A stretch of 64,000 nucleotides of DNA from Octopus bimaculoides (Eukaryota): NCBI RefSeq assembly GCF_001194135.2, contig NC_068984.1, forward strand, positions 18,103,235 to 18,167,234, read 5' to 3'. Every line of letters starts with the position of its first letter. Within the stretch, counting starts at the first letter, position 1. Position numbers and translations under genes: made by a program. The notes under the pieces are model-generated. The model did no database searches. It was not told the origin of the DNA and saw only the letters and a program-made list of their open reading frames with translations. Shown here piece by piece: positions 3,546 through 64,000 of the stretch.

Positions 3546-3695
3546 TATGGCTCTGTGGTTAAGAAGTTTGTTTGCCAACCTCTTGCTTTTGGGTTCAGTC
3601 TCATAGTGTGACATTTTGGGCAAGTGTTTCCTACTACAACATTAGATTGACTAAAGCCTTGTGAGTGATTGCGGTAGATAGAAACTGAAAGAAGC
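3546..3695 (+). mobile_element. SINE family A (tRNA-like head), 5' half, diverged
   Basis: Matches head and core of the copies at 58715 and 53455 (tggctctgtggttaagaag...gggcaagtgtttcctact...gccttgtgagtg...gaaactgaaagaagc). Confidence 0.75.
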
Positions 3696-8685: not shown

Positions 8686-9290
8686 ATCATCATCATCATC
8701 ATCATCTTTGTAACATCCAGTTTTCCATGCTTGCATGTGTTGGATGAATTTGCTGAGGCAGATTTTCTCTGACTAGATGCTCTTCTTGTTGCCAACCCTC
8801 ACTTGTTTCCAATAAATAAAATTATTAACCATAACTCTGAGCACCTTTTCAAATTCCACCTGTTTAACACCCGTGGACATGTTTACAAAGTCAGAAAACA
8901 GCACAGCTCCCATGACTTTCGGAAACACTTTTTCACACTAAGAGTTGCTGAAGTATGGAACAAACTGCCGGCATCGGTTGTTAGTTGTCGGAGCACTGCA
9001 TCCTTCAAAACTTCCATGCTTCCTGAGATTCGCCAACACTACACCTGATTTTCTCCCCTCCATACACACGCAAGCATGTATCTGACTCATACACTGTTCA
9101 CTTTTCCAGACATTTGTACAATACTGCATATGCTTTATACGTACTTTTAACAAGTTGTAGTGCACCTGAGCACTGTATACAATAATTTCATTATTATTTT
9201 AAGGTAATATTACCCCTTCGCCAGACATGTTTTCATGACAGACTGGAGATGAATGACATTGCTTGAATGACAGTAACACTTGCTTACAGC
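8686..9290 (-). mobile_element. Family B2 retroposon interrupted by a CR1 insertion
   Basis: (CAT)n tail then gaggcagattttct...gccaaccctcacttgtttccaa, resuming after the LINE as aaggtaatattacccc...ccagacatgtttt. Compare copies at 51085 and 59894. Confidence 0.7.
8814..9200 (+). mobile_element. CR1/L2-group LINE 3' end (ORF2 C-terminus, 3' UTR, ATT tail)
   Basis: Encodes NTRGHVYKVRKQHSSHDFRKHFFTLRVAEVWNKLPASVVSCRSTASFK, the canonical CR1 ORF2 end (TRGH..K...FF..RV...WN.LP..VV...FK). Ends in ttcattattatttt. Confidence 0.9.
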
Positions 9291-9324: not shown

Positions 9325-9482
9325 GATGAGCTTCTTTTAGGTTTCATATACCAAATCGACCCTCTGGCTTTGGCTGGGCCAGGCCTCTATTTCAAGACAT
9401 TTGTCTAAGGTGCCGTGCTGTGAAACTGAACCAAGAACCTTGTGGTTGGGAAGTTAACTACTTAACCACACAGCCACACCTG
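9325..9482 (-). mobile_element. SINE family A, 5' half, diverged
   Basis: Reverse complement of the family A head (cttaaccacacagccacacctgc; gaactgaaccaagaaccttgtggttggg). Confidence 0.7.
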
Positions 9483-12344
9483 CATCTATATGTTTATATA
9501 TATATTGCATGTTGTTGCATGTAGTTTTGCAATCTCACTTATAAATTGTAGCTATAAAAAAAAATGTGAATGATGGTTGGTTTTACTATGTTATATATTT
9601 ACCCCTATTGCTGTATATCATAGTATGTTGATGACTAATTGGTACAATTGTATATTGGGATCATTGTGTTTTCCAAGTCCTTGTGATTTTATTCAGATCT
9701 ATTGTAGTTCACTGAATAATCATATACTGATAGAAGCAGCCAAATTAATGGCTGTGGTTGATGACTTGATTATTAATGAGTATTAATTATAACCAGTTGT
9801 CTTTTGTAATTCTTGCATTGGAGTGACATTCTGTATCATTTCACTAATCTCACATCTAAATTATCTGGAATGATGATGCCGTAGTAAAAGTTAATAATAT
9901 GTAAATGATTAGTATTAAAATAAACAATTTCTTTGTCTCAACTAAATTGCATTTTTTTCATTCTTTGTCCTCATTACAAAGCTGCAGTGACTACACAGTG
10001 TAAAGTTATTTCACTAAATATGCTGTTATACTATTTGTACCCTTAATATAATCAGACTTTATTAGATCTTTAAAAGCTTATTGATATATTGTTTCATAAA
10101 TGCATTTATTTTAAAGATATTTATTCTGCAGCTGCATTAGCAAGCAGGAAGATAACTTTTGTTCTTTTGGAAACTATTGCTTTTAAGAAGTTAAATTTTA
10201 TTATCGATTTATGGAAGCAAATCACCAATTCATTATGCGGCCTTCTCTCCTTTTATCTGCAGCAGCTGCTGTGTAATATAAAATAGCCAAATATTATGGT
10301 ATTTATTTGGTTAAAATTATTATTCAGTCCTGTTTATTGAAGTGGTCTTTGCTTTTGCTCATGTTTGTAGCTTATTAATATGTTCATTGTGTGTTACAAG
10401 GTAGATTATTTCTTCGATCAATTATTAGAATCTATCATTTATTAGCAGACATTATGATTAAGACAGAAAATATCCTTTGATAAATGTTATTTTCTCTCAG
10501 TAGTTGTAAAGAATATATATATATGTGTGTATATATATGTGTGTGTGCATACACTTATAACATGGAAAGAATCATATAGTTCTTTGATGTAGCCTTTAAT
10601 GATGCAAAACGCTCTGATATTATTTATTAGATCTCCTTAACTTTATTCTAAGAAACTACCTGACAAACAGAAGCATATAAAAAAACAGAATTCTGCAGAA
10701 AGAGTTTTCAGAGTTAAAGAATCTGTTACAGTCTGGTCACAATATGGTGAATATATAATTGCTCTAACCTTTATAATATTTATTATTAAAGGTAAAATGT
10801 AGTTATTCAATTGTTTTATTGGGTTTCTGTTTTTTACTGTCTGTAGAAGTGGAGTTATTTAAAGAAAATTGATTTTCTTTAAATCTTTAAGCTAGATGTT
10901 AAAACATTTTCTTTCAAACCTACTTTCCATAATGACATTTTTTTTGATAAAAGTTATTGAATATATTTATGAAAGTAAAAATTGCAAAAATAAGCAATTG
11001 TTTTATTGTAAGACATAATTTGCATATTTTGGATTACTACGACTGAAATTAGAAAAAACTTGCAACAAAACTTATTAAAGAACTGGTTTCTATTCTCAAT
11101 TTTAACCATTTTGCTTATTGTTTCTAACACCTTTAAGAAAATCATGACCAATACATAATATCTCTGTTTAGCCACGTTGCTAGTCTAGAAATCTCTGACG
11201 ACAGCAAACCACTTTCACAATTCACTTGCACTACACATTCTTTCCTCCTGAATTAATATTCCAGACACATTTTATGTCTCTAGACACTGCAGGTATTTTG
11301 TTTTCATCACCTGCAATTAGACTGACATTGAAATAAGTGGTTTTACATTATAATAAAAGGTGTTAGCCAAATAATCTTCTTCTAAAATATTTACTGAGAA
11401 TTAAATGGTACAATTATTGATGCATTTGTCTGTGTACATTTTCTTGACTAGACTTTATATTCAGTAACAAAATAGTGAAAATGAATGTGAATTTCTTATA
11501 TAATCATTCAATTGTTTACACTTTTATTTTTATTAAAAATAGCTTGTATGTAATAGATATTATTAAGTCGAAATTAAATTTTTCGAAATTCTTACTGTGG
11601 AGTTTATTTTATGAAATTGCCAATCTCTTGGTCATGTATCTTTTGTGTACATTTCTATACCTTTGTGCTATTTTGCACATGTGCTTTGTTATAAAAGTCC
11701 AGTAAGTAGACACTTATGTACATGGATTTTTTTATTTCTGTATTGGCATATGTTGTAGTCTTCCTAGTTATTGATCTTTTCATTTATTCAACTTAACCCT
11801 GTAGGACTTTGGGGTATTGATCAGTTCAAATAAGCATATATATATATATATATGAGGAAAATCATGCCACATGCTATGCAGCAGCTATATATTAATACAC
11901 TAAAGCCAAACATGTGACATAGTCACATTGTTAGTTGAAGGGAAAAGCAAAGAAGGAGAAAGAGAGAGCAAGAAGAGCGTTAGTGGTGAGAGCTAGGAGA
12001 AAGGGATTATGTGATTAAATAGTTGGTTGAAAGATGTTCTACAGAAAAGGAAAGAAATAGAACATTTAGCAGAGGGAATGTGGTATTGTTGAAAGGAAAG
12101 AGAGTGAGTGTATGTTTACTGAAGGGAATGTAGGAGTAGAAAATGCTATAACACTTGATATTCCACCTTCAATACTACACATGTTGACTTTTACATCATC
12201 TCATGAATCAAGGGCCTCAGAAAAAATATACAGTTCCATCTTAGAATTTTCAAAACGACTGCGGAATTTTCATGAGTATTGTTAGTATTAATAATTATCA
12301 AATAATGCTATATAAGAACATATTTCTGAGTTATAGTCACCCTT

Positions 12345-12762
12345 TTACTCTTTTTACTCTTACTTGTTTCAGTTATTTGACTGTGACCATGCTGGAGCAC
12401 CGCCTTTAGTTGAGCAAATCGACCACAGGACTTATTCTTTGTAAGCCTAGTACTTATTCTGTCGGTCTTTTTTGCTGAACCGCTAAGCTACAGGGACGTA
12501 AACACACCAGCATCAGTTGTCAAGCGATGTTGGGGGGACAAATGCAGACACATATACATACATATATATATGACGGACTTCTTTCAGTTTCCATCTACCA
12601 AATCCACTCACAAGGCTTTGGTCGGCCTGAGGCTGTAGCAGAAGANNNNNNNNNNGGTCGGCCTGAGGCTGTAGCAGAAGACACTTGCCCAAGGTGCCAC
12701 GCAGTGGGACTGAACCCGGAACCATGTGGTTGGTAAGCACGCTCTTTACCACACAGCCACTC
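12345..12762 (-). mobile_element. SINE family A, full length
   Basis: tRNA-like head with A box (tggctgtgtgg) and B box (ggttcagtccc), internal TG/TA microsatellite, and 3' tail gactgaaacaagtaagagtaaaa. Confidence 0.9.
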
Positions 12763-16958: not shown

Positions 16959-19328
16959 AATATGTATATATGTATATACATACATATGTACATATGTGAA
17001 TAAAAACTTCTAGTTGTGGCATCCTGGTTAATATTATGAAGGACTTAGAATTAGGCAGTTAAATTTAACAGGAAAAAAAATGCTGTCACTGATTAGGAAT
17101 AGTTACCTGTATGTCGCTCTCTACATACACCACATCACCAGTATTATAAATAAGGTATAACATGTACGACAGGCTGTATATGACAAAGACTAATCTTTCT
17201 GTAATTGAATAAAGTCATTTGTATTTTCAATATGAAGAATTTTTTTTTTTTTTTTTTTTTTTTGATTAGGGGCTGGATTTTCTAAGTAACTTTGTATTTC
17301 TGAACATTTAGTTGGTTTTACGAAGTAAATGTAGTTTTGGAAATAGGTAAAAGTGCTATGAACCCTTTAAAAAAATCTTTTTGTGTAAAGAGATGCTTAA
17401 ACTAGTTTATATAGTGAAAAATGTAGTTTGTTGATCTACATTAAAGTGTGTCTAGTTGAGGAATTTGCTCATGTTTATGTCTCAGAGATTTTATTAAAAA
17501 TTGTTTTTCAATGTAGGGAAGAGAAAAAAAGATACAGGTTCTTACGCATGAGCAGTTTTATGGAAGTAATTGACAACCTTTTACAATTCTTTTAGTTTAG
17601 AATTCTGCTATAACACCTTTGCCTTTCTAAGAAAGCTCTCTTGTTCAGTTACTACTTTGTATTGTTGAAATATGCTCTGTAAGTGAAAGGATATTGTCAG
17701 ATATACATTATAATCAACAAATAAAAGATTCCATAGACTCAATACTTAACACTCATGCACAAAACTTTTACTGCTGAATAGTCTTTGTATAAAACTAATG
17801 TTTTTATTTTTTATTCTTTTAGCTTATTCTGTTGTTTCGTTACATTGAATTTTGAAATTTACTGCATTGCAATATATGATCATGAATCAAAACGGAACAT
17901 TTCAAAAATAAGTTTAGTTATATGTATGTACGTACGTATAATATATATATATATATATANNNNNNNNNNNNNNNNNNNNNNNNNNNNNNNNNNNNNNNNN
18001 NNNNNNNNNNNNNNNNNNNNNNNNNNNNNNNNNNNNNNNNNNNNNNNNNNNNNNNNNNNNNNNNNNNNNNNNNNNNNNNNNNNNNNNNNNNNNNNNNNNN
18101 NNNNNNNNNNNNNNNNNNNNNNNNNNNNNNNNNNNNNNNNNNNNNNNNNNNNNNNNNNNNNNNNNNNNNNNNNNNNNNNNNNNNNNNNNNNNNNNNNNNN
18201 NNAATGTTATCTACAGAGTTTTTAATCTCATAAATACACTTTTTACGTATTTCGAAACATCAAAAATGTTTTTAATATTAGAAAAACACAAATTTGAGTC
18301 CATCTGTAGCATGATTGCCTAGCTTTAGCTGAATGACATATTTGGTTTTCATTTTGGATATATTGCTGAATGAGTTTTTGTATATTTTAAAATTTGCAGG
18401 AGGGGAAAAAAACAACAACAAAACATCAAAACAACACAAATATTCCTCACAATTTCGTTTTGAAAAGCAATGATGCACATCAAATCTGATTGTAATCACA
18501 ATCACCATGCACATTTTAATGTTAACATATTCATGTTGGCAGGAATTGGATTTTTTGTTCTCTTATCTATTTTTATGGATGTTATATTTGGAGATAAGAT
18601 ATTTGATTGAAAAATAATTTAAGAATTGCATTGATTCAAGAATTAAGCTGAGGTTCAATATTTTGAATGAGTTTCATGGTAATAAAGCTACCACTGAATT
18701 GCAAGAATCAATAAACTTAATTTTATTTCTGCTACAGCACAATAGCAACAAGCTCTGACCTTGTAACCTTTCAATGCACCATCTATACCAAAGCTTTCCA
18801 AAGTTTTTGAACTCACGAAATGTAAATGCAATAATGTTAAAATTACGACACACTTGTCTGACTAAATACATTAATCTTTAGATCTACTAGATAAAGGAAA
18901 AATGATTAACACTTTTAAATATTTAGTTAAAGGGAACTATTCTGTTTTTAACTGGTCTTTTCTAATGAAGCTACTTTCATGTGATACAGGGATATTTCCA
19001 AGATACTAGGATATATCGGAGACACTCTCTTTGTCTCTACAATATCGAAGAAAAGTCCTTCTTTGTTTTCTGTATTTCAAGTTCATAAATATTGAAATAT
19101 CTCAGCTTGAGGCAAAACTTAAAGCAAAATTACTAATAACAGAAAATACATCTTAATAGACACTCAAACTTCGTTGGGCGACTTCAGTAAATTTCAGTTT
19201 TAGGCAAAGGTCACTGGAATTAGCGCTCTGTTCTTCAGTTACAGCAAACTTCGAGTCAGATGGTAGAGAGATATGAATAGGCTTCTTATCATCATTATCA
19301 ACGTTGTTATCATCATCATGCATGCATG

Positions 19329-20179: not shown

Positions 20180-20530
20180 TTATCTTTTATCTTTTACCTG
20201 TTTCAGTCATTAGATTGTGGCCATGCTTGAGCACTGCCCTGAACAATCTGTCTTAGTCGAGTCATTCAACCCCAATACTTATTTTTTTGAGAAACCTGGC
20301 ACTTATTCAGTCTACCAAGTTATGGGGATGCAAATACACCAACACTGGTTGTCAAGCAATGGTCTCTCTCACACACAAACACTCACACATATATGACAGG
20401 CTTCTTTCAGTTTCTGCCTACCAAATCCACTCACAGTGCTTTTGTTGACTTGAGGCTGTAATAGAAGACATTTGCCCAAGGTGTCATGTAATGGGACTGG
20501 ACCCAGAACCATGTGGTAGGGAAGCAAGCT
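20180..20530 (-). mobile_element. SINE family A, near full length, diverged
   Basis: Colinear with 12345-12762 from tail to head. Confidence 0.85.
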
Positions 20531-25294: not shown

Positions 25295-26303
25295 AATTGA
25301 CACATCTAATGTATACTGCTATTTCAAGTAGCAAGCAAAAACAATATCATNNNNNNNNNNNNNNNNNNNNNNNNNNNNNNNNNNNNNNNNNNNNNNNNNN
25401 NNNNNNNNNNNNNNNNNNNNNNNNNNNNNNNNNNNNNNNNNNNNNNNNNNNNNNNNNNNNNNNNNNNNNNNNNNNNNNNNNNNNNNNNNNNNNNNNNNNN
25501 NNNNNNNNNNNNNNNNNNNNNNNNNNNNNNNNNNNNNNNNNNNNNNNNNNNNNNNNNNNNNNNNNNNNNNNNNNNNNNNNNNNNNNNNNNNNNNNNNNNN
25601 NNNNNNNNNNNNNNNNNNNNNNNNNNNNNNNNNNNNNNNNNNNNNNNNNNNNNNNNNNNNNNNNNNNNNNNNNNNNNNNNNNNNNNNNNNNNNNNNNNNN
25701 NNNNNNNNNNNNNNNNNNNNNNNNNNNNNNNNNNNNNNNNNNNNNNNNNNNNNNNNNNNNNNNNNNNNNNNNNNNNNNNNNNNNNNNNNNNNNNNNNNNN
25801 NNNNNNNNNNNNNNNNNNNNNNNNNNNNNNNNNNNNNNNNNNNNNNNNNNNNNNNNNNNNNNNNNNNNNNNNNNNNNNNNNNNNNNNNNNNNNNNNNNNN
25901 NNNNNNNNNNNNNNNNNNNNNNNNNNNNNNNNNNNNNNNNNNNNNNNNNNNNNNNNNNNNNNNNNNNNNNNNNNNNNNNNNNNNNNNNNNNNNNNNNNNN
26001 NNNNNNNNNNNNNNNNNNNNNNNNNNNNNNNNNNNNNNNNNNNNNNNNNNNNNNNNNNNNNNNNNNNNNNNNNNNNNNNNNNNNNNNNNNNNNNNNNNNN
26101 NNNNNNNNNNNNNNNNNNNNNNNNNNNNNNNNNNNNNNNNNNNNNNNNNNNNNNNNNNNNNNNNNNNNNNNNNNNNNNNNNNNNNNNNNNNNNNNNNNNN
26201 NNNNNNNNNNNNNNNNNNNNNNNNNNNNNNNNNNNNNNNNNNNNNNNNNNNNNNNNNNNNNNNNNNNNNNNNNNNNNNNNNNNNNNNNNNNNNNNNNNNN
26301 NNN

Positions 26304-26347
<44 letters not shown>

Positions 26348-26350
26348 GCA

Positions 26351-26690
26351 TAGGTACAGACATGGCTGTGTGGTAAGAAACTTGGTTTTGAACCACATGG
26401 TACCGGCTTCAGTCCCACTGTGTGGCACCTTGGCTAAGTGTCTAATACTAGAACTTCAGGCTGACCAAACCTTGTGAGTGAATTTGGTAGACAGAAACTG
26501 AAAGAGCCCTGTTGTATATATATGTGTGTGTCATTGTTTACCTATCTCCCCCCTCACTATCGCTTGACAACCGATCTTGTGTTTACGTCCCTGTAACTTA
26601 GCAGTTCAGCAAAGGCGATTGATAGTATATGTACTAGGCTTGTAACGAATAAGTCCTGGGGTCAATTTCTTTGACTAAAAACCCATTAAG
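26351..26690 (+). mobile_element. SINE family A, 3'-truncated
   Basis: gacatggctgtgtggtaagaa...aataagtcctggggtcaattt. Confidence 0.85.
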
Positions 26691-26743: not shown

Positions 26744-27160
26744 NNNNNNNNNNNNNNNNNNNNNNNNNNNNNNNNNNNNNNNNNNNNNNNNNNNNNNNNN
26801 NNNNNNNNNNNNNNNNNNNNNNNNNNNNNNNNNNNNNNNNNNNNNNNNNNNNNNNNNNNNNNNNNNNNNNNNNNNNNNNNNNNNNNNNNNNNNNNNNNNN
26901 NNNNNNNNNNNNNNNNNNNNNNNNNNNNNNNNNNNNNNNNNNNNNNNNNNNNNNNNNNNNNNNNNNNNNNNNNNNNNNNNNNNNNNNNNNNNNNNNNNNN
27001 NNNNNNNNNNNNNNNNNNNNNNNNNNNNNNNNNNNNNNNNNNNNNNNNNNNNNNNNNNNNNNNNNNNNNNNNNNNNNNNNNNNNNNNNNNNNNNNNNNNN
27101 NNNNNNNNNNNNNNNNNNNNNNNNNNNNNNNNNNNNNNNNNNNNNNNNNNNNNNNNNNNN

Positions 27161-27304
27161 GGGCTTCTTCCAAATTCACTCACAAGGCTTTGGTTGGCCC
27201 GAGGCTATAGTAGAAGACACTTGCCCAAGGTGCCACGCAGTGGAACTGAACCCGGGACCATGTGGTTGGTAAGCAAGCTACTTACCACATAACCACTCCT
27301 GCGC

Positions 27305-27307
<3 letters not shown>
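27161..27307 (-). mobile_element. SINE family A, 5' half
   Basis: cacaaggctttggttggcccgaggctatagtagaagacacttgcccaagg...cttaccacataaccactcctgcgcct. Confidence 0.9.
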
Positions 27308-27339
<32 letters not shown>

Positions 27340-29162: not shown

Positions 29163-29455
29163 TGTGAAGGTGACTTAGTAGTTAGGATGTTGCATTCATG
29201 ATTGCTAGATCATGGGTTCAATTTCCAGACCATGCAGTGCATTGTGTTCTTGAGCAAAACACTTCATTCCCTGTTGCTCCAGTCTACACAGCTGTAAATG
29301 GGTCACCATGCAATGGAATAGTCTTCGATCAGTGGGGATGTTGACCTGTTCACCTACCCAGTGAAGTGGCATCATTCAAAGGCTAAAACAATGTAAAGCA
29401 CATTGAGACCAGTGACGTATAACAACATCCGATAGTCTGGTCAATATCATGATTC
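29163..29455 (+). mobile_element. SINE family C
   Basis: ttagtagttagg...gggttcaatttccagacc...gtgttcttgagcaaaacacttcatt...ccagtctacacagctgtaaatggg. Confidence 0.75.
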
Positions 29456-29477
29456 CATGATTTCTTATAGTGATGCG

Positions 29478-29746
29478 TGGTCATTGTTCGTGCTACCTGA
29501 CTAGCTCCTATGCCAGTGGCACATAAAAAGCACCATTCGAGTGTAGTCAATGCCAGTGGCATGTAAAAAGCACCCATTACACTCTCAGAGTGGTTGGCGT
29601 TAGGAAGGGCATCCAGCTGTAGAAACATTGTCAGATCAGATTGGAGCATGGTGCAGCCTTCTAGTTTGCCAGTCCTCAGTCAAACTGACCAACCCATGCC
29701 AACATGGAAAGCGGATGTTAAACGATGATGATGATGATGATGATGA
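29478..29746 (+). mobile_element. Family B retroposon
   Basis: Family B core and tail ggaaagcggatgttaaacgatgatgatg. Confidence 0.9.
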
Positions 29747-36529: not shown

Positions 36530-37588
36530 TTTATTTTTTATAACATAAATTGTTTAAATTTCGTGTGTATGTGTGTGTTGTTATGGGGAGGAATTAAAAA
36601 ATTAGAATCTGCAATAAGTCAAATCGTATCCATTTTCTGTCTGAGTATGTAATATTAAAAATTCATTTTTCTAATTATATTAGAATTACAGCTATGTCTA
36701 AGTGAACAGAGATTTAGTATATCCATATGCAAAAGCTTATGGTAGTGTTGACTGGTGCTGCACTAATTAATTGCCTATTTTTAAAGCTAGTGACACTAAG
36801 TGGTAATTCAGTGTCAGTCATTCTCACTGAAGCTTCCGTTGTTGCTTCTTGGTATTCACTAAGTTAATGTGAATATTGATTTTTAACATCAGCTTGAATT
36901 CTTGATGTAGGCCATTTCATTTGTTAAAAAAGAGAGAGAATCATTGATTTTATCATAAATTTTATGCATCAGATTACATTGGTTGATCATTGTATTTACA
37001 AAATCTGTTTATTGTAAAGAGAGGCCCTAAATTTCTAATTGTTTTACCAAAATGGAAATCTAGTCATACAAAAACAAAATGAAATAAAGAAATAAAAATT
37101 TTAAAAAAATTGTATAATGCATTGAAGAGAAGCTGAGTGAACTAGCTAGTGTGTGCATAATGAAAATAAAACAGTTATTATTACATCCAAAATTTAACCC
37201 AGCCTGCTTATGTGGTGATGACTTTTAAGACTAGGTTGGGTATGGAATATCGAATCTTTTGTCATTGTAATTATGTCTCTTGCATCAAAATATTGAAAGC
37301 TTTTTTTTCTCCTTTTCTTTTCTTTTTTTTTTAATTTTCTTTTTTATAAAATTTTGTCAATATCCAAGAAGTCAATATTCAAGATGCAATGAAAGACTAA
37401 TGTTTTCTATATTAGATTTTCAATTCTTTGATGGTTAAATATCAGCTTAGATTTCCAAATAATGGTATAAAAGAACAATCTTATCTCAATGGTTAAATGG
37501 AAAATGTGGGTGTTTATACAAATGTGTGTGTGTGTGTGCATTGTGCCCTAAACCCCACCTCCCTTATGTATGTACATACAAACATACA

Positions 37589-37740
37589 TAGGCATGGCTG
37601 TGTGGTTAAGAAGTTTGTTTTGCAACCATATGTTTTCAGGTTCAATTCCACTGCACAACACGTTGGGTGTCTTCTATAGCTCAGGCCAACCGATGCCTTG
37701 TAAATGAATTTGGCAGGCAGAAATTGTGTAGAACCGCATA
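37589..37740 (+). mobile_element. SINE family A, 5' half
   Basis: aggcatggctgtgtggttaagaag...ggttcaattccactgc. Confidence 0.8.
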
Positions 37741-37769
37741 CATACATGCATACATACATACATATATAC

Positions 37770-38197
37770 AAGAGGGATGACCACTAAGTGGACATCCATT
37801 TTGCTAGAAGAAGACCACCTACGGTCTGGTCTGACCACTAGGAATAGATTGTTCTCAAGAAAATTCCGTAAACACCAGAATGTAAGCGAGCAAGACAAAT
37901 GAAAAGATACAAAATATAAGGAATTAATCGTGCGGACGTCTCGTGTATAGTTCTGCAAATTATATTCCAAAGGATGATCATGCTGAAGAGTTGCAGACAA
38001 TTACATAAGTAATTACATAAGTCAACAACGAAACCGGTCTATGATTAATTCTCTATATTTTGTATCTTTTCATTTGTCTTACTCACTTACATTCTGGTGT
38101 TTGCTGAATTTTCTTGAGAACAATCTTTTCTTAGTGGTCAGACCGTAGGTGGTCTTCTTCTAGCAAAAGGGATGTCCACTTAGTGGTCATTCCTCTT
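37770..38197. mobile_element. Fold-back element: ~160-bp inverted arms around a hammerhead-containing spacer (Penelope/retrozyme-like)
   Basis: Left arm 37770-37929 (aagagggatgaccactaagtggacatcc...gaattaatc) is the reverse complement of right arm 38043-38197 (gattaattc...ggatgtccacttagtggtcattcctctt). Flanked by TA-rich microsatellite. Confidence 0.9.
37976..38046 (+). ncRNA. Minimal Type I hammerhead ribozyme, intact core
   Basis: Stem I GATCATG (37976-82) / TATGATT (38040-46); core CTGAAGA (37983-89); stem II GTTG (37990-93) / CAAC (38026-29); GAAA (38030-33); palindromic stem III ACCGGT (38033-38); GUC cleavage after C38039. Confidence 0.85.
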
Positions 38198-38387
38198 ATA
38201 TGTATGTAATATAATTTTTCTGAATCTTCAGATTTTTCAATTTGCTAGGCCACTAGTTTTAAATTGATATTAATCAAATTAATGTTGAATTTTTCACCCT
38301 TATTATTTAAATTTATATATATATGTATAAAGAGAGAAAAGGATAAAGAGAACAATGGCAAAGTTAGAAATATATTTTATGGATAAA

Positions 38388-40415: not shown

Positions 40416-40605
40416 TATGACAGGCTTCTTTCACTTTCTGTCAACAAAATCCACTCACAGGGCCTTGGTTGACCTGAGGTTATAGTAGAAAACACTTGCC
40501 CAAGGTGCCACACAGTGGGACTGAAACTGGAACCAATCAAAGGGGTCCAGAACCATGTGGTTGGAAAACAAACCCCTTACCATACAGCCATGCCTGCGCC
40601 TATGT
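40416..40605 (-). mobile_element. SINE family A, 5' half
   Basis: atatgacaggcttctttc...cttaccatacagccatgcctgcgcct, with a short insert near 40530-40550. Confidence 0.85.
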
Positions 40606-41210: not shown

Positions 41211-41708
41211 TCTAGGCCCTGCATTAAAACCTTTGCTTCCTACCACCACCACCACCACCACCACCACCACCANNNNNNNNNNNNNNNNNNNNNNNNNNNN
41301 NNNNNNNNNNNNNNNNNNNNNNNNNNNNNNNNNNNNNNNNNNNNNNNNNNNNNNNNNNNNNNNNNNNNNNNNNNNNNNNNNNNNNNNNNNNNNNNNNNNN
41401 NNNNNNNNNNNNNNNNNNNNNNNNNNNNNNNNNNNNNNNNNNNNNNNNNNNNNNNNNNNNNNNNNNNNNNNNNNNNNNNNNNNNNNNNNNNNNNNNNNNN
41501 NNNNNNNNNNNNNNNNNNNNNNNNNNNNNNNNNNNNNNNNNNNNNNNNNNNNNNNNNNNNNNNNNNNNNNNNNNNNNTATATATATATATATATATATAT
41601 GTTGAACAGGAAACAAAAAAAAGATTCTCATAACATTAAAAGATGTCATCATCCATCATAATTTTTGTTTTCCCTGTTGGCATGAATCTGTTATATATTC
41701 AGTAGTTT

Positions 41709-42969: not shown

Positions 42970-43351
42970 TGGAGGCGCAATGGCCCAATGGTTAGGGCAG
43001 CGGACTCGCAGTCATAGGATCGCGGTTTCAATTCCCAGACCGGGCATTGTGTTTAATGAGTGAAAACACCTAAAGCTCCACGAGGCTCCAGCAGGGGATG
43101 GTGGCGAACCCTGCTGTACACTTCCACCACAACTTTCTCTCACTCTTACTTCCTGTTTCTGTTGTGCCTGTAATTCAAAGGGTCAGCCTTGTCACACTGT
43201 GTCATGCTGAATATCCCCAAGAACTACGTTAAGGGTACACGTGTCTGTGGAGTGCTCAGCCACTTGCACATTAATTTCACGAGCAGGCTGTTCCGTTGAT
43301 CGGATCAACTGGAACTCTCGACGTTGTAAGCGACGGAGTGCCAACAACAAC
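42970..43351 (+). mobile_element. Full-length tRNA-derived SINE (family D) with 15-bp TSD
   Basis: A box tggcccaatgg, B box ggtttcaattccc and (CAA)n tail. TSD aatccttttgaaatg (42955-69) / aatccttttgatatg (43352-66). Possibly the tRNA-Arg-related OR family of octopus (inference). Confidence 0.92.
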
Positions 43352-43366
43352 AATCCTTTTGATATG

Positions 43367-43590
43367 GTGATGGAGCCATGTAAAAAGCACCCAGTATACT
43401 CAGTAGAGTGGTTGGCATTAGGAAGCACATTCAGCTGTAGACACCATACTGAAACAGACTGTGGAACCTGGTATAGCCCTTGGCCTTGCCAGTTACTGTC
43501 AAGCTATCTGACCCATGCTAACATGGAAAACGGATGTTAGATATTGTTGTTGTTGTTGTTGAGGATGATGATCATGATAATGATGTACCA
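43367..43590 (+). mobile_element. Family B retroposon, diverged
   Basis: aaaaagcacccagtatactcagtagagtggttggcattagg...ggaaaacggatgttag. Confidence 0.8.
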
Positions 43591-46195: not shown

Positions 46196-46866
46196 ATTTC
46201 TTTCAGTCGTACAAAATCAAAATGTTACCTAGGAATGTATTGCTTTATTCATTAATGGCAGCCATTTTGTCCTGGTAGATTGAAGAGATCAGTGACCATA
46301 AAAGCCAATAAGCATTCAAGATTATATTTGCTGAGAGAGGGGGTGGGGAAGGTTAAGTGTTTAGATAAAACAAGGTATATGAAGGCTGTTTAGAAATTAT
46401 TTTTATCTGTACCAGTACAGCTATAGTTTGTTCATTTTGGTCTCTGATATGCCTATACATATTTGAGAACCCATTTGATACATAGTAGCTTAGACTTCTT
46501 TAGGCTTTACTAGAATGAATCACTGCAACTTAGAACAGAAACTTAGATTCAGAACAGTTGATTTATTGCAAATATAAACGACCCCNNNNNNNNNNNNNNN
46601 NNNNNNNNNNNNNNNNNNNNNNNNNCCCAAACATAATCGCCTTTTGTAATCTTACTGCTTGACTTTTACAAAATTATCTTTAAATAAATGTTTTTACTGT
46701 TCCAAAAATATAATTAATAACATTTTTGTTTAATATTAAATCTAATTGTTAAGAATAACTAGATTAGTTTTCTTCTCCATGCAGTACCTAGTTTTTCAGT
46801 TTTAATACTAATATTTCCTTTGAAAAACAAATTATTTATTACTTTTTTCTTTCTTTTCAATTGCAG

Positions 46867-53874: not shown

Positions 53875-54440
53875 CATCATCATCACTGTTTAACATCTGC
53901 TTTCCATGTTGGCATGTGTTGGACGATTTGACTGAGGACTGGCAAACCAGATGGCTGCACCAGGCTCCAATCTGATCTGTCAGAGTTTCTACAGCTGGAT
54001 GCCCTTCCTAATGCCAACCACTCCGATAATGTAGTGGGTGCTTTTACGTGCCACCGACATGAGGGCCAGTCAGGCGGTACTGGCAATGGCCAGACTCAAA
54101 TGGTGTTTTTTACCTGCCACCTGCACTGGCAACAACCTTGCTCGAATATTTTTTTTTTTACGTGCCACCAGCACAAGTGCCAGTAAGGTAACACTGTAAT
54201 GATCACGCTTGAATGATGCTTCTTACGTGCCACCGGCATGAGAGCTAGTCAGCTGCTCTAGCAAGGATCACACTTGGATGATGCTCTTAGCACTCTACTC
54301 GCACAGATGCCAGTCATGTGGTGCTGTCATCGAATTTGATTTTGATTTCGATTTCCTCAACAGGTCATCGCAAGCAGAGTTTAGTGCCCAATGAAGGAAA
54401 AGTACACATAAGTGGGCTTTGTACAATATTTAGATATTGT
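53875..54440 (-). mobile_element. Family B retroposon with internal tandem units
   Basis: Tail, core and four ttacgtgccacc-like units, as in 35618-36062. Confidence 0.9.
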
Positions 54441-58075: not shown

Positions 58076-58714
58076 TCATTGATTTAACCTGTATAATTAT
58101 ACAGTTAAGCATGGGTCAGCATTCTTAATGTAGTGAATCTAAACAAATGTTTAATCAACTGAAATTATACACTTGCAATGAGAATAAAGTCATTAATGTT
58201 AATGTTAATGACTAGTCTTCTCAATAAGAGCAAAGGGGAGAGAACTTTGAAGTATAAATTGATTAAAAACTAAATAGATACATGCAGCAGAAAGTGTGTC
58301 TGATTTTTGGTGCTGATATAGTGTAATGTCTTAATATTGTTTTGCTGAAGCAGAGTGGTGAGAGGTTTAAAAGGAATTTGTAATAAAACAGTTTCAATGT
58401 AAATGAAGTTTTGCCTACTTTTAAGATGATAGTCAAATTTATGAGAACATGTATTTGTTGAACAATTTTTTTTTATGGCACTAAGCCAATTTTCTAGAAA
58501 GTATTTATCACAAATTTGCAATTTTATAGCAATTTTGTGATAAATATTTCATTTCCTTTTTAAATTTATTTTTATTGGCTTTAGCAAAACTAAATCTGTA
58601 ACTGTGGTCAATATACTATGTTAAAATTAATTATAGTCATATACTATGCTAGAGCTACAGATATCAGTTTTCTATATTTGTTCAATAATCTATGATGAAA
58701 ATATTTTTTAAATA

Positions 58715-59072
58715 GACATAGGCATGGCTCTGTGGTAAGAAGCTTGCTTCGTAACCACATGGTTCCAGGTTCAGTCCCACTGCATGGCACTTTGGGCAAG
58801 TGTCTTCTACTACAACCTCAGGCTGACCAAAGTTTTGTGAGTAGATTTCAAAACTGAAAGAAGCCTGTTTGTGTGTGTGTAACTATGTATGTGTATCTTT
58901 GTATCTGTTTGTCCCCTGCCACTGCTTGACAACAGGTGTTGGTGTGTTTACGTTCCTCTAACCTAACAGTTCAGCAAAAGTACTCAGTTCAACTCATTTG
59001 ATTAAGAATTCTTCATGGTGATGCCCCCGCATGGCCACAGTCTATTGAATGAAACATGTAAAAGATAAAAGA
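58715..59072 (+). mobile_element. SINE family A, near full length
   Basis: aggcatggctctgtggtaagaagcttgc...gcatggccacagtctattgaatgaaacatgtaaaagataaaagat. Confidence 0.9.
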
Positions 59073-59893
59073 TATTCATTTACTCTGAAAATAGCCAAAA
59101 ATAGCCATATGTGTCTGTTTGTTTGTGCATGCATAGATTTGTTATGCATATGTACAGATTTGTGTGTGTGTGTGTGTGTGTAAGTTGATGTTTAAGTATA
59201 TGTTCATGAGTGTATGTATGAGAATTCAAATTCAACCAGAAATAAATCTTTTGAAAAGTTAATGCTGATGCAAGCATTGAAGGCAATTCTTTATCAATTA
59301 CAATGGTGTGAACGATTCAAGCCACACACAGATGAATTGCAAATGTAATTCCATGTTGTCTTCATCTGTAATTAAATCTCACTATACATATAACTTGTAA
59401 TAAAAAATTATGTTGTACAAATACACTCTAAACGAAGACATTGAAAGTCTGTAAAAAACACAGAACGCNNNNNNNNNNNNNNNNNNNNNNNNNNNNNNNN
59501 NNNNNNNNNNNNNNNNNNNNNNNNNNNNNNNNNNNNNNNNNNNNNNNNNNNNNNNNNNNNNNNNNNNNNNNNNNNNNNNNNNNNNNNNNNNNNNNNNNNN
59601 NNNNNNNNNNNNNNNNNNNNNNNNNNNNNNNNNNNNNNNNNNNNNNNNNNNNNNNNNNNNNNNNNNNNNNNNNNNNNNNNNNNNNNNNNNNNNNNNNNNN
59701 NNNNNNNNNNNNNNNNNNNNNNNNNNNNNNNNNNNNNNNNNNNNNNNNNNNNNNNNNNNNNNNNNNNNNNNNNNNNNNNNNNNNNNNNNNNNNNNNNNNN
59801 NNNNNNNNNNNNNNNNNNNNNNNNNNNNNNNNNNNNNNNNNNNNNNNNNNNNNNNNNNNNNNNNNNNNNNNNNNNNNNNNNNNNNNNNNNNNN

Positions 59894-60015: not shown

Positions 60016-60164
60016 AAAGATTTGTAACTATAGTTACTCATTATTATAATGAAAAGCAATATTAAATGGAGATACCTCTGAAGAAAAGGAGGATATCCCT
60101 TTACCTATATTGTGCACTAAATTTATTAGAATAACAAGGGAATCGTTTGTATCCTTCAACACCA

Positions 60165-60580
60165 TCATCATCCGCTTTCCATGCTGGCATGGGTTGGACA
60201 GTTTGACTGAGGACTCGCACGCCAGGAGGCTGTACCAGACTCCAATCTGATCTGGCAAGGTTTCTACAGCTGGATGTCCTTTTTAATGCCAACCACTCCA
60301 AGAGTGTAGTAGGTGCTTTTTACATACCACTTGGACTGGGGCCAGTCAGGTGATCATGGCATCAACCATACTCAAATGGAGCTTTTTATGTGTCACCAGC
60401 ACGGGAGCTAGTCAGGTGGCACTGGTGTTGGTGATGACAATGGTTTCACTTGACTCAGCAGGTGTCCTCAAGCACAGTATGCTACTCAATGATTGAAGTT
60501 TACTCATAAATGGGCCGGTTATGCAACACTGGCATAGGCCATGGTTATGGTCTCACTTGGCTTGCCGGGTCTTCTAGAGT
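60165..60580 (-). mobile_element. Family B retroposon
   Basis: Tail, core and 5' extension matching 3705-3830. Confidence 0.85.
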
Positions 60581-61282: not shown

Positions 61283-61492
61283 GTGAACAGGGATGCTGTC
61301 TTTAGATTTGGTAACAACAAGTCTCCTCAAATCTCTTACATAATACAGGATTGCATTTTTCTGCAGGTCAACAACGTGTGTCTTAACTCCAATAGCATAC
61401 ACTCTCTTAGGTAGAAGACTGGGTATTGTACCAAGTACACCAATTATCACAGGAATAATTGTTGTTTTAGTCTTCTGCAATCGCATCATCAC
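61283..61492 (-). mobile_element. REL-endonuclease non-LTR retrotransposon (R4/NeSL-like) C-terminal remnant
   Basis: KTKTTIIPVIIGVLGTIP...AIGVK...DLQKNAILYYVRDLRR matches the typical end ..VPVVIGALG.IP...LQK.ALL...ILR. Confidence 0.8.
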
Positions 61493-61535
61493 TCTGGCTA
61501 GGTCCTTCTATTTTCAGTTTTTTTTCTAATTTTTA

Positions 61536-61570: not shown

Positions 61571-61735
61571 NNNNNNNNNNTTATTGAGTGAGAGCGTAGT
61601 GCATGCCATCAAAAGGGACGCTGGAGTAAAATGTATGAAACCCAGTTTGCCCATCACGACTACCTGTCTGATAAGGGTACACCAGGCACATGCATCACAA
61701 CATGGTGATCTCATATCAAGGTAAGCAGTGCATAC
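61545..61735 (-). mobile_element. Retroposon 3' end with (AAT)n tail
   Basis: (ATT)n then gagtgagagcgtagtgcatgccatcaaa...gggtacaccaggcacatgcatcacaac, next to the REL-type fragment. Confidence 0.55.
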
Positions 61736-63520: not shown

Positions 63521-63557
63521 TTTTATTGTATGTTATAGTAGGCTTTAAAATGCATGC

Positions 63558-63589
<32 letters not shown>

Positions 63590-63685
63590 ACATATATATG
63601 TATGTATGTATACATATATATGTATGTATGTATACATATATATGTATGTATGTATACATATATATGTATGTATGTNNNNNNNNNN

Positions 63686-63772
63686 TTTAACGTCCGCTTT
63701 CCATGCTAGCATGGGTTGAACGATTTGACTGAGGACTGGTGAAACCGGATGGCAACACCAGGCTCCAATCTA
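63686..63772 (-). mobile_element. Family B tail fragment inside a TA/TG microsatellite field
   Basis: tttaacgtccgctttccatgctagcatggg...caccaggctccaatct, nearly identical to 40205-40415. Confidence 0.85.
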
Positions 63773-64000
63773 TGCATGTATACATATATATGTATATATA
63801 TATGCATACATATGTATATATATATATATATATATGCATACATATATATGTATACATGTGTGTGTGTGTATACATATGTATGCATATGTATATATATATA
63901 CATATATGTATATGTGTGTGTGTGTGTATATATGTGTATTTATATATATGTGTGTGTATATACAAGTATATATATATATGTGTATATATATGTCATCATC

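Follow-up and report, generated by a model that had tools for sequence, protein, structure and literature searches.

A type I hammerhead motif between the arms of an Octopus bimaculoides fold-back: a candidate relic of a non-autonomous retroelement insertion

How did a motif with every hallmark of a hammerhead ribozyme come to lie between the two arms of a fold-back in the genome of Octopus bimaculoides, and is it more than a chance arrangement of letters? To answer this we analysed a window of 64,000 nucleotides (contig NC_068984.1, positions 18,103,235 to 18,167,234; coordinates below are those of the window), which contains no long ORFs and, in this draft assembly, is interrupted by nine N runs (12646-12655, 17960-18202, 25351-26303, 26744-27160, 41273-41577, 46586-46625, 59469-59893, 61571-61580 and 63676-63685). 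These assembly gaps, several of which lie beside TA/CA microsatellites, yield false 'perfect' inverted repeats and long X-filled ORFs.

On sequence grounds we judge the plus-strand segment 37975-38047 to be a complete type I hammerhead, genuine by descent rather than a chance match. All of the invariant positions are present (C3 U4 G5 A6 N7 G8 A9, G12 A13 A14, the A15.1-U16.1 pair, and an H17 that is not G). The 5' strand of helix I (37975-37982, +; TGATCATG in DNA and UGAUCAUG in RNA, by direct reading and descriptor) pairs over 8 bp with the 3' strand (38040-38047, +; TATGATTA in DNA and UAUGAUUA in RNA), the last 5 nt of which are within the right arm of the fold-back. This helix includes two G.U pairs (G37976.U38046 and G37982.U38040), and its outermost pair, T37975-A38047, extends both the 7-bp stem I and the span of 37976-38046 given in an earlier, sequence-only reading of this DNA; helix I is open, which makes the topology type I. 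The catalytic core box C3-A9, CTGAAGA (CUGAAGA), occupies 37983-37989 (+) both by direct reading and in the Rfam alignment, and it is followed by helix II with loop 2 (37990-38029, +), a helix of 4+3 bp interrupted by a 2x2 internal loop. In its proximal part GTTG (37990-37993) pairs with CAAC (38026-38029), i.e., GUUG/CAAC in RNA, the closing pair G10.1-C11.1 being G37990-C38029; beyond the internal loop CA/AA, GAC (37996-37998) pairs with GTC (38021-38023), i.e., GAC/GUC, leaving a loop 2 of 22 nt (37999-38020). The 12-bp tandem duplication previously noticed in stem II is exact, with TRF reporting two 12-nt units of AATTACATAAGT at 37999-38022 (+, 100% match); it spans loop 2 and distal helix II, and the undivided form would give a 10-nt loop. 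The rest of the core, consisting of G12 A13 A14, A15.1-CCGG-U16.1 and C17 (38030-38039, +; again by direct reading and Rfam alignment), comprises GAAA at 38030-38033 and the palindrome ACCGGT (ACCGGU) at 38033-38038, with U16.1 at U38038 and C17 at C38039; the predicted cleavage is between C38039 and U38040. Our direct reading agrees with the complete type I core claimed earlier (CUGAAGA, G-C-closed stem II, GAAA and cleavage triplet), and the palindromic stem III ACCGGU is where it was said to be. Within one molecule, helix III is a single A-U pair capped by the palindromic CCGG tetraloop; as modelled, a proper helix III would require two molecules, which pair as a 6-bp ACCGGU duplex, and the ribozyme would be of the dimer-dependent kind.

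The Rfam Hammerhead_1 model (RF00163) aligned over its full length (model positions 1-45 of 45) at 37977-38045 (+) in a permissive search of 221 nt (37900-38120), scoring 22.5 bits with an E-value of 0.0024. The covariance-model check that had been proposed thus gave a full-model alignment with a score below Rfam's gathering score of 34; in whole-window Rfam searches no family reached its gathering threshold, and Hammerhead_1 was lost at the filter stage in permissive E-value mode. The alignment places a 28-nt insertion in loop 2, and we infer, by judgement and not by computation, that the low score is mainly due to it. Rescaled for this family only, the E-value corresponds to ~1.6e-4 per window and ~7 per 2.7-Gb genome. 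In the other proposed check, a hand-written type I descriptor (CUGANGA, G-C-closed helix II, GAAA, palindromic helix III insert, U, H, helix I) identified one site on both strands of the whole 64-kb window, this being the 37975-38047 motif, and a looser descriptor (without the G-C closure or the palindrome) again found this motif only in the whole window. When the window was shuffled 1,500 times with dinucleotide composition preserved, the descriptor matched nowhere, even after its minimum lengths had been relaxed to 4 bp for helix I and 3 bp for helix II. Analytically, chance should produce 3.3e-4 sites per window under the relaxed descriptor; for sites as good as the observed one the figure is 2.9e-6, equivalent to 0.13 per 2.7-Gb genome, or to 0.007 if the 4-nt palindrome is demanded. 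The intactness of the core, noted in the earlier reading, need not mean function, and we rejected it as a sign of selection because the neutral probability that the 13 invariant core positions stay unmutated at ~4% divergence per arm is ~0.55-0.62.

Would such an RNA cleave itself today? In predicted folds of the isolated 71-73-nt RNA, helices I and II form; in the fold of minimum free energy, which is not the hammerhead, there is in addition a GCUG/CGGU pairing across the core. A double-hammerhead dimer with the 6-bp ACCGGU helix III is predicted at -24.5 kcal/mol, versus -15.6 kcal/mol for two monomeric hammerhead folds; the minimum-free-energy folds of two monomers sum to -29.6 kcal/mol and the dimer minimum is -33.2 kcal/mol, so that the double hammerhead is not the minimum either. 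In short transcripts all but one of the eight helix I pairs have a pairing probability of 0.5-1.0 (the exception, the core-adjacent G37982.U38040, has 0.1), and helix II reaches at least 0.95. Most pairs of helices I and II have predicted pairing probabilities of 0.8-1.0 in transcripts starting at 37930, and likewise in transcripts from 37759 to 38047, and fall to ~0 once a left-arm-containing transcript reaches 38060, 13 nt beyond helix I. The full 458-nt region folds as a near-perfect predicted hairpin (-275 kcal/mol, z = -26); in read-through transcripts the arms would be expected to win, with a hairpin of ~170 bp replacing the hammerhead fold. On these models self-cleavage at the present locus is unlikely, because a single dimer-dependent ribozyme has no partner within 64 kb, because read-through transcripts favour pairing of the arms over the hammerhead fold, and possibly because loop 2 bears a duplication. 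The sequence-only reading suggested possible activity on plus-strand transcription; for this locus that is doubtful, there being one ribozyme, no dimer in cis, and helices I and II at ~0 when both arms are present.

The ribozyme sits in the 113-nt spacer of a 450-bp fold-back with arms at 37759-37929 and 38043-38208, which agrees with its earlier placement in the spacer of a long fold-back element. By repeat finding and alignment, the right arm (38043-38208, +) is the body and 3' end of a plus-strand copy, ending in UAUAUGUAUGUA, and the left arm (37759-37929, -) is an inverted, 5'-truncated copy of 38043-38208. Upstream of the ribozyme there is a unique 45-nt leader (37930-37974, +) whose alignment scores are within the shuffle range, with no significant inverted or direct similarity to the remaining element. 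The plus-strand copy (37930-38208; 279 nt, GC 0.36) is made up of the 45-nt leader, the ribozyme and a 166-nt body, and our reading of the sequence is that this non-coding copy of ~279 nt is probably joined head-to-head to an inverted, 5'-truncated copy of the body only. The arms differ by 7.2% (12 of 166 positions, with nine transitions and three transversions) and by one 5-nt indel, and are 92-94% complementary; we consider the fold-back biological, and rejected an assembly artefact, because the arms are 7% apart and differ by an indel. No other long inverted repeat in the window is real; the remaining candidates are N runs and microsatellites. The two arms have common outer ends (37759 and 38208), and the plus-strand copy reaches 113 nt further in the 5' direction. 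The inner end of the inverted copy corresponds to 38043, or to 38040 if two T/C transitions are allowed, which places it 0-3 nt past the predicted cut (38039|38040), an observation made at a single locus; by our estimate, a site would fall this close (within 3 nt) to one or other inner boundary by chance with a probability of 14/450 (~0.03). Two further resemblances within the spacer were rejected: an extension of the inverted repeat into it as a degenerate minus-strand second ribozyme (466 of 2,000 shuffles score equally), and its start as a direct repeat of the 5' half of the ribozyme (1,089 of 3,000 shuffles score equally). With a Jukes-Cantor distance of 0.09 equated to ~25 My in octopus (PMC13282606), the divergence of ~0.04 per arm suggests, as a rough estimate, that the insertion is ~10 My old.

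The outer end of the left arm abuts and overlaps a (CATA)n microsatellite of 8.5 units (37737-37770; TRF and sequence), which is probably the insertion target and/or the tail of a SINE-like repeat upstream. The right end bears TATATGTATGTA and the left boundary (CATA)8.5; target and element sequence are inseparable from one copy, and with one copy no target-site duplication or tail could be defined. The SINE-like repeat itself (37565-37735, +) is directly upstream of the fold-back, ends in the (CATA)n tract, and is not continued in the right flank. Its related copies in the window (approximately 58710-58809, 27167-27331, 26327-26500, 12656-12759, 3547-3597, 9407-9505, 40551-40595 and 20408-20530) and in an Octopus vulgaris locus, L001 (2743-2881, 6785-6923 and 19590-19755), are 69-85% identical and dispersed. 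Also upstream of the fold-back are two short collinear resemblances to the right arm, 37472-37493 being 86% like 38117-38138 and 37558-37574 82% like 38192-38208; these are probably due to chance or driven by microsatellites, and we do not favour their being a third, heavily decayed partial copy.

Elsewhere the window has the look of repeat debris. A 91-aa stop-free segment at 8773-9045 (+) resembles the C-terminal part of a LINE-type ORF, with best matches of 86% and 84% to 'hypothetical predicted protein' entries of Octopus vulgaris, one match being named 'Tick transposon' by UniRef, and no Pfam domain was found in it. Four other stop-free translations (29386-29679 (-), 43195-43503 (-), 53932-54183 (+) and 60104-60319 (-)) share motifs such as LQLDALPNANHS and appear to mark another dispersed repeat family; near two of them, blastn matched window positions 29498-29740 and 53875-54053 to L001 2058-2303 and 19195-19377. 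A 75-aa stop-free segment at 61283-61507 (-), containing IIPVIIGVLGTIPSLLPKRVYAIGV, had no Pfam match; it presumably resembles the C-terminal region of some invertebrate retrotransposon ORFs. At 63550-64000 a compound TA/CA/CATA microsatellite block gave many sub-threshold matches to mir-297, mir-466, mir-1277 and mir-3149, the best of them scoring 60.6 bits against a gathering score of 90, and we read these as low-complexity artefacts and not as microRNA genes.

Searches for relatives of the element were negative throughout. In the 64-kb window blastn found no second copy of the element, and the two descriptors no second hammerhead, nor is there a tandem unit. Exact scans for an arm 22-mer and for the ribozyme pattern gave no hit in JGI metagenomes, IMG/VR or prokaryote genomes, the spurious ORFs translated from the element had no match in a collection of 5.8 billion proteins (which includes octopus-derived ORFs), and exact-ORF look-ups in public assemblies also gave no match. 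The O. vulgaris locus L001, which was reached via the LINE-like ORF, has only dispersed repeats in common with the window and contains no convincing hammerhead; it was rejected as an orthologous locus. We identified no remnant of a Penelope-like element (PLE) reverse transcriptase or endonuclease in the window by tblastn with the Poseidon_Ac protein (PMC11167929 supplement); among the stop-free segments of the window none is RT- or EN-like, and the four scanned against Pfam had no match. An adjacent autonomous PLE was rejected on these negative tblastn and Pfam results, and it is possible that the ribozyme copy is a truncated or non-autonomous PLE derivative. Our literature search found no paper describing hammerheads in cephalopods.

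The explanation that we favour, with a probability of about 0.58, is that the locus is the relic insertion of a non-autonomous, hammerhead-bearing retroelement by PLE-type machinery. PLE insertions often have an inverted, 5'-truncated copy at their 5' end and favour microsatellites (PMC8557442), and they may carry an optional tail of 30-40 bp (PMC8557442, PMC11167929). In experiments with a purified PLE protein, both DNA strands served as substrates for cleavage and extension, and reverse transcription began at an internal site (PMC11167929); initiation of this kind on both strands would give two head-to-head copies with common outer ends. By analogy with these systems, PLE machinery would have inserted the element once, at a (CATA)n/(TA)n microsatellite, with both target DNA strands priming reverse transcription from the same internal 3' site of the element RNA, and this shared start site would account for both outer ends, 37759 and 38208. 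One cDNA would have run through an uncleaved ribozyme to 37930, and the other may have run out of template where the ribozyme had cut the RNA (38040-38043), leaving what would now be a solo relic of ~10 My with a single ribozyme and no dimer partner in cis. The last of these steps stands apart from the others: on the position of the boundary, it is a tentative and rather doubtful proposal that a hammerhead-cleaved RNA was later reverse-transcribed and that the inner end at 38040-38043 records its 5' terminus. In this scenario the PLE machinery, the two-strand priming and the severing of the template RNA are inferences. Counting against the favoured reading are the sub-threshold Rfam score, an arm boundary that is 3 nt off unless two transitions are allowed and was observed once, the lack of any further copy of the element or ribozyme and of any PLE RT or endonuclease remnant, the absence of two PLE min-hammerhead traits, a hammerhead fold that is not the minimum-free-energy fold, and the fact that insertion of the one PLE tested in vitro needed no ribozyme cleavage (PMC11167929).

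Several of these points can be turned towards other explanations. If the ribozyme is genuine and the fold-back arose from a DNA-level event, such as template switching at a replication fork or break repair, the closeness of the boundary to the cleavage site would be coincidental, and the structure would be a piece of a tandem retrozyme or pLTR array duplicated in inverted orientation and not the product of both-strand-primed reverse transcription. This would suit a boundary that misses the cleavage site by 3 nt except when two transitions are granted, the weakness as evidence of a one-locus coincidence with p ~0.03, the lack of a definable target-site duplication, and a copy that at 279 nt and GC 0.36 is within the 170-400-nt range of retrozyme units (PMC7229834). 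We nevertheless think it unlikely, as the arms end together at a microsatellite, which fits a common start of reverse transcription, the layout has been described repeatedly for PLE insertions (PMC8557442), and there is no tandem array or second unit nearby. That the motif is itself a chance match, within an unrelated fold-back such as a MITE-like DNA element or another hairpin-forming inverted repeat, is distinctly improbable in our view. While a score of 22.5 bits against a gathering score of 34, the ~7 matches of at least 22.5 bits expected by chance in a 2.7-Gb genome, the unusually long loop 2 (22 nt), the GCUG/CGGU pairing across the core in the minimum-free-energy fold and the want of homologues would all be explained, chance alone should satisfy the descriptor 3e-6 times per window and 0.13 times per genome (0.007 with the 4-nt palindrome), and none of the 1,500 shuffles contained a match even in relaxed form. 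A chance match also leaves features that the core does not force, i.e., the G10.1-C11.1 closure, the palindromic helix III and the 8-bp helix I, as well as the closeness of the cleavage site to the arm boundary.

Finally, the fold-back might be a hairpin RNA used by the host, its stem of ~170 bp feeding small-RNA or A-to-I editing pathways and the ribozyme trimming the loop or separating the strands. Cephalopods edit double-stranded RNA heavily, the 458-nt region is a near-perfect hairpin (-275 kcal/mol, z = -26), and the hammerhead would have just the brief time until transcription of the right arm in which to form, all of which can be taken as points for a host role. Its arms, however, have drifted by 7% and an indel with no sign of compensatory maintenance, its surroundings are remains of SINEs and microsatellites, neither a promoter nor conservation being in evidence, and a single dimer-dependent ribozyme would be a poor processing device; we consider this explanation very improbable.

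The position of the inner boundary is where the favoured reading, a PLE-type insertion of a hammerhead-bearing element, would have consequences beyond this locus. If the inner end is that of a cleaved RNA, the fold-back would be the genomic footprint of hammerhead cleavage in vivo ahead of both-strand-primed reverse transcription. Cleavage of the template RNA has been proposed as a step since 2014 and was unseen in the one PLE reconstituted in vitro, where insertion did not depend on the ribozyme cutting and none of the RNA-seq reads terminated at the cut (PMC11167929). Should the end of the inverted copy recur at the cleavage site among copies, this would be in vivo evidence for the role, long uncertain, of cleavage in Penelope-type retrotransposition, and would also back the both-strand priming model for the inverted layout of PLE insertions.

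How, then, does the octopus motif compare with known hammerhead systems? Metazoan type I hammerheads with a helix III of 1-2 bp and a small palindromic loop act as dimers (PMC4209133), and the combination of a single-bp helix III, a palindromic tetraloop and dependence on dimers is known from the hammerheads of amphibian satellites and retrozymes and of PLEs (PMC7229834, PMC4209133), which agrees with the earlier view that this architecture is known from dimer-dependent PLE and retrozyme hammerheads. By this comparison the helix III of the octopus motif matches the amphibian/PLE dimer-dependent type, whereas the published ribozymes of invertebrate retrozymes are described as usually having a more stable helix III (PMC7229834). 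Like the amphibian satellite 2 and axolotl retrozyme ribozymes (HHR_Amex1 type), the motif is of type I with a 4-bp proximal helix II, G-C closure, a 1-bp helix III and a palindromic tetraloop, an arrangement in which efficient cleavage is dimer-dependent (PMC7229834). Unlike in that type, loop 1/loop 2 tertiary-contact nucleotides are not identifiable in the octopus motif, its loop 2 has 22 nt with a 12-nt duplication, and its host is a mollusc; moreover, the amphibian ribozymes are in tandem arrays of 330-350 bp with tens of thousands of copies, whereas here there is a single one within an inverted repeat. The string GAAACCGGTC is reportedly indexed twice in a 1986 paper on newt satellite 2.

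With the min-hammerheads of PLEs (PMC4209133) the motif shares type I topology, a minimal palindromic helix III, the G10.1-C11.1 pair and a long helix II (4+3 bp). Those of PLEs are mostly solo motifs from truncated elements, some being paired on opposite strands 100-700 bp apart (PMC4209133). The locus also has the inverted-copy layout and microsatellite target of PLE insertions (PMC8557442), with an inverted 5'-truncated copy beside the 5' end of a longer copy and shared 3' (outer) ends. It differs in that the octopus helix I has 8 bp where theirs has 4-5 bp, in that G10.1 follows A9 directly with no unpaired nucleotide between them, and in that the window contains no RT/GIY-YIG ORF and no pseudo-LTR pair; the short helix I, the bulge after A9 and the pseudo-LTR of an RT and GIY-YIG element that mark a PLE min-hammerhead are all lacking.

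The invertebrate non-LTR retrozymes of mussels and corals (PMC7229834) offer a second likeness, since the octopus copy too is a non-coding unit of a few hundred nt with low GC (0.36) and one type I hammerhead; at 279 nt it is inside the retrozyme ranges of 170-400 nt and GC <45-50% (PMC7229834), if it is indeed a full unit. The units of metazoan retrozymes, 150-450 bp long and each with its own type I hammerhead, are repeated in tandem and give rise to linear and circular unit-length RNAs (PMC7229834); the octopus locus is instead one unit with an inverted partial copy, and there is one hammerhead and no tandem unit in 64 kb. ARAGORN found no tRNA-like gene in the whole window. The Sm-alpha SINE of Schistosoma is a dispersed, non-autonomous retroelement with a type I hammerhead, mentioned in PMC4209133, and to that extent is a further likeness; unlike it, the octopus element shows by eye no tRNA-like or pol III promoter module in its 45-nt leader.

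Taken together, these comparisons indicate that the motif would work in the manner of the PLE/retrozyme hammerhead families and is most likely derived from them, and we regard it as a candidate new member rather than a confirmed one, because its Rfam score is below threshold, PLE traits are missing and the tandem arrangement of retrozymes is absent. The earlier attribution to a non-autonomous cephalopod retroelement stands as to the octopus host and the PLE-like layout (PMC8557442), but several defining PLE and retrozyme traits do not accompany it, and the family spoken of there is putative, no second copy having turned up in the window or in the collections scanned. Octopus genomes contain PLE families, and these have expanded there (PMC13282606, PMC8967140), and there is precedent for a mollusc host in the ~5,000 retrozyme copies of Mytilus (PMC7229834). 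Type I hammerheads in animal retroelements, including those of molluscs, are already known, and the motif in octopus adds a host rather than a principle.
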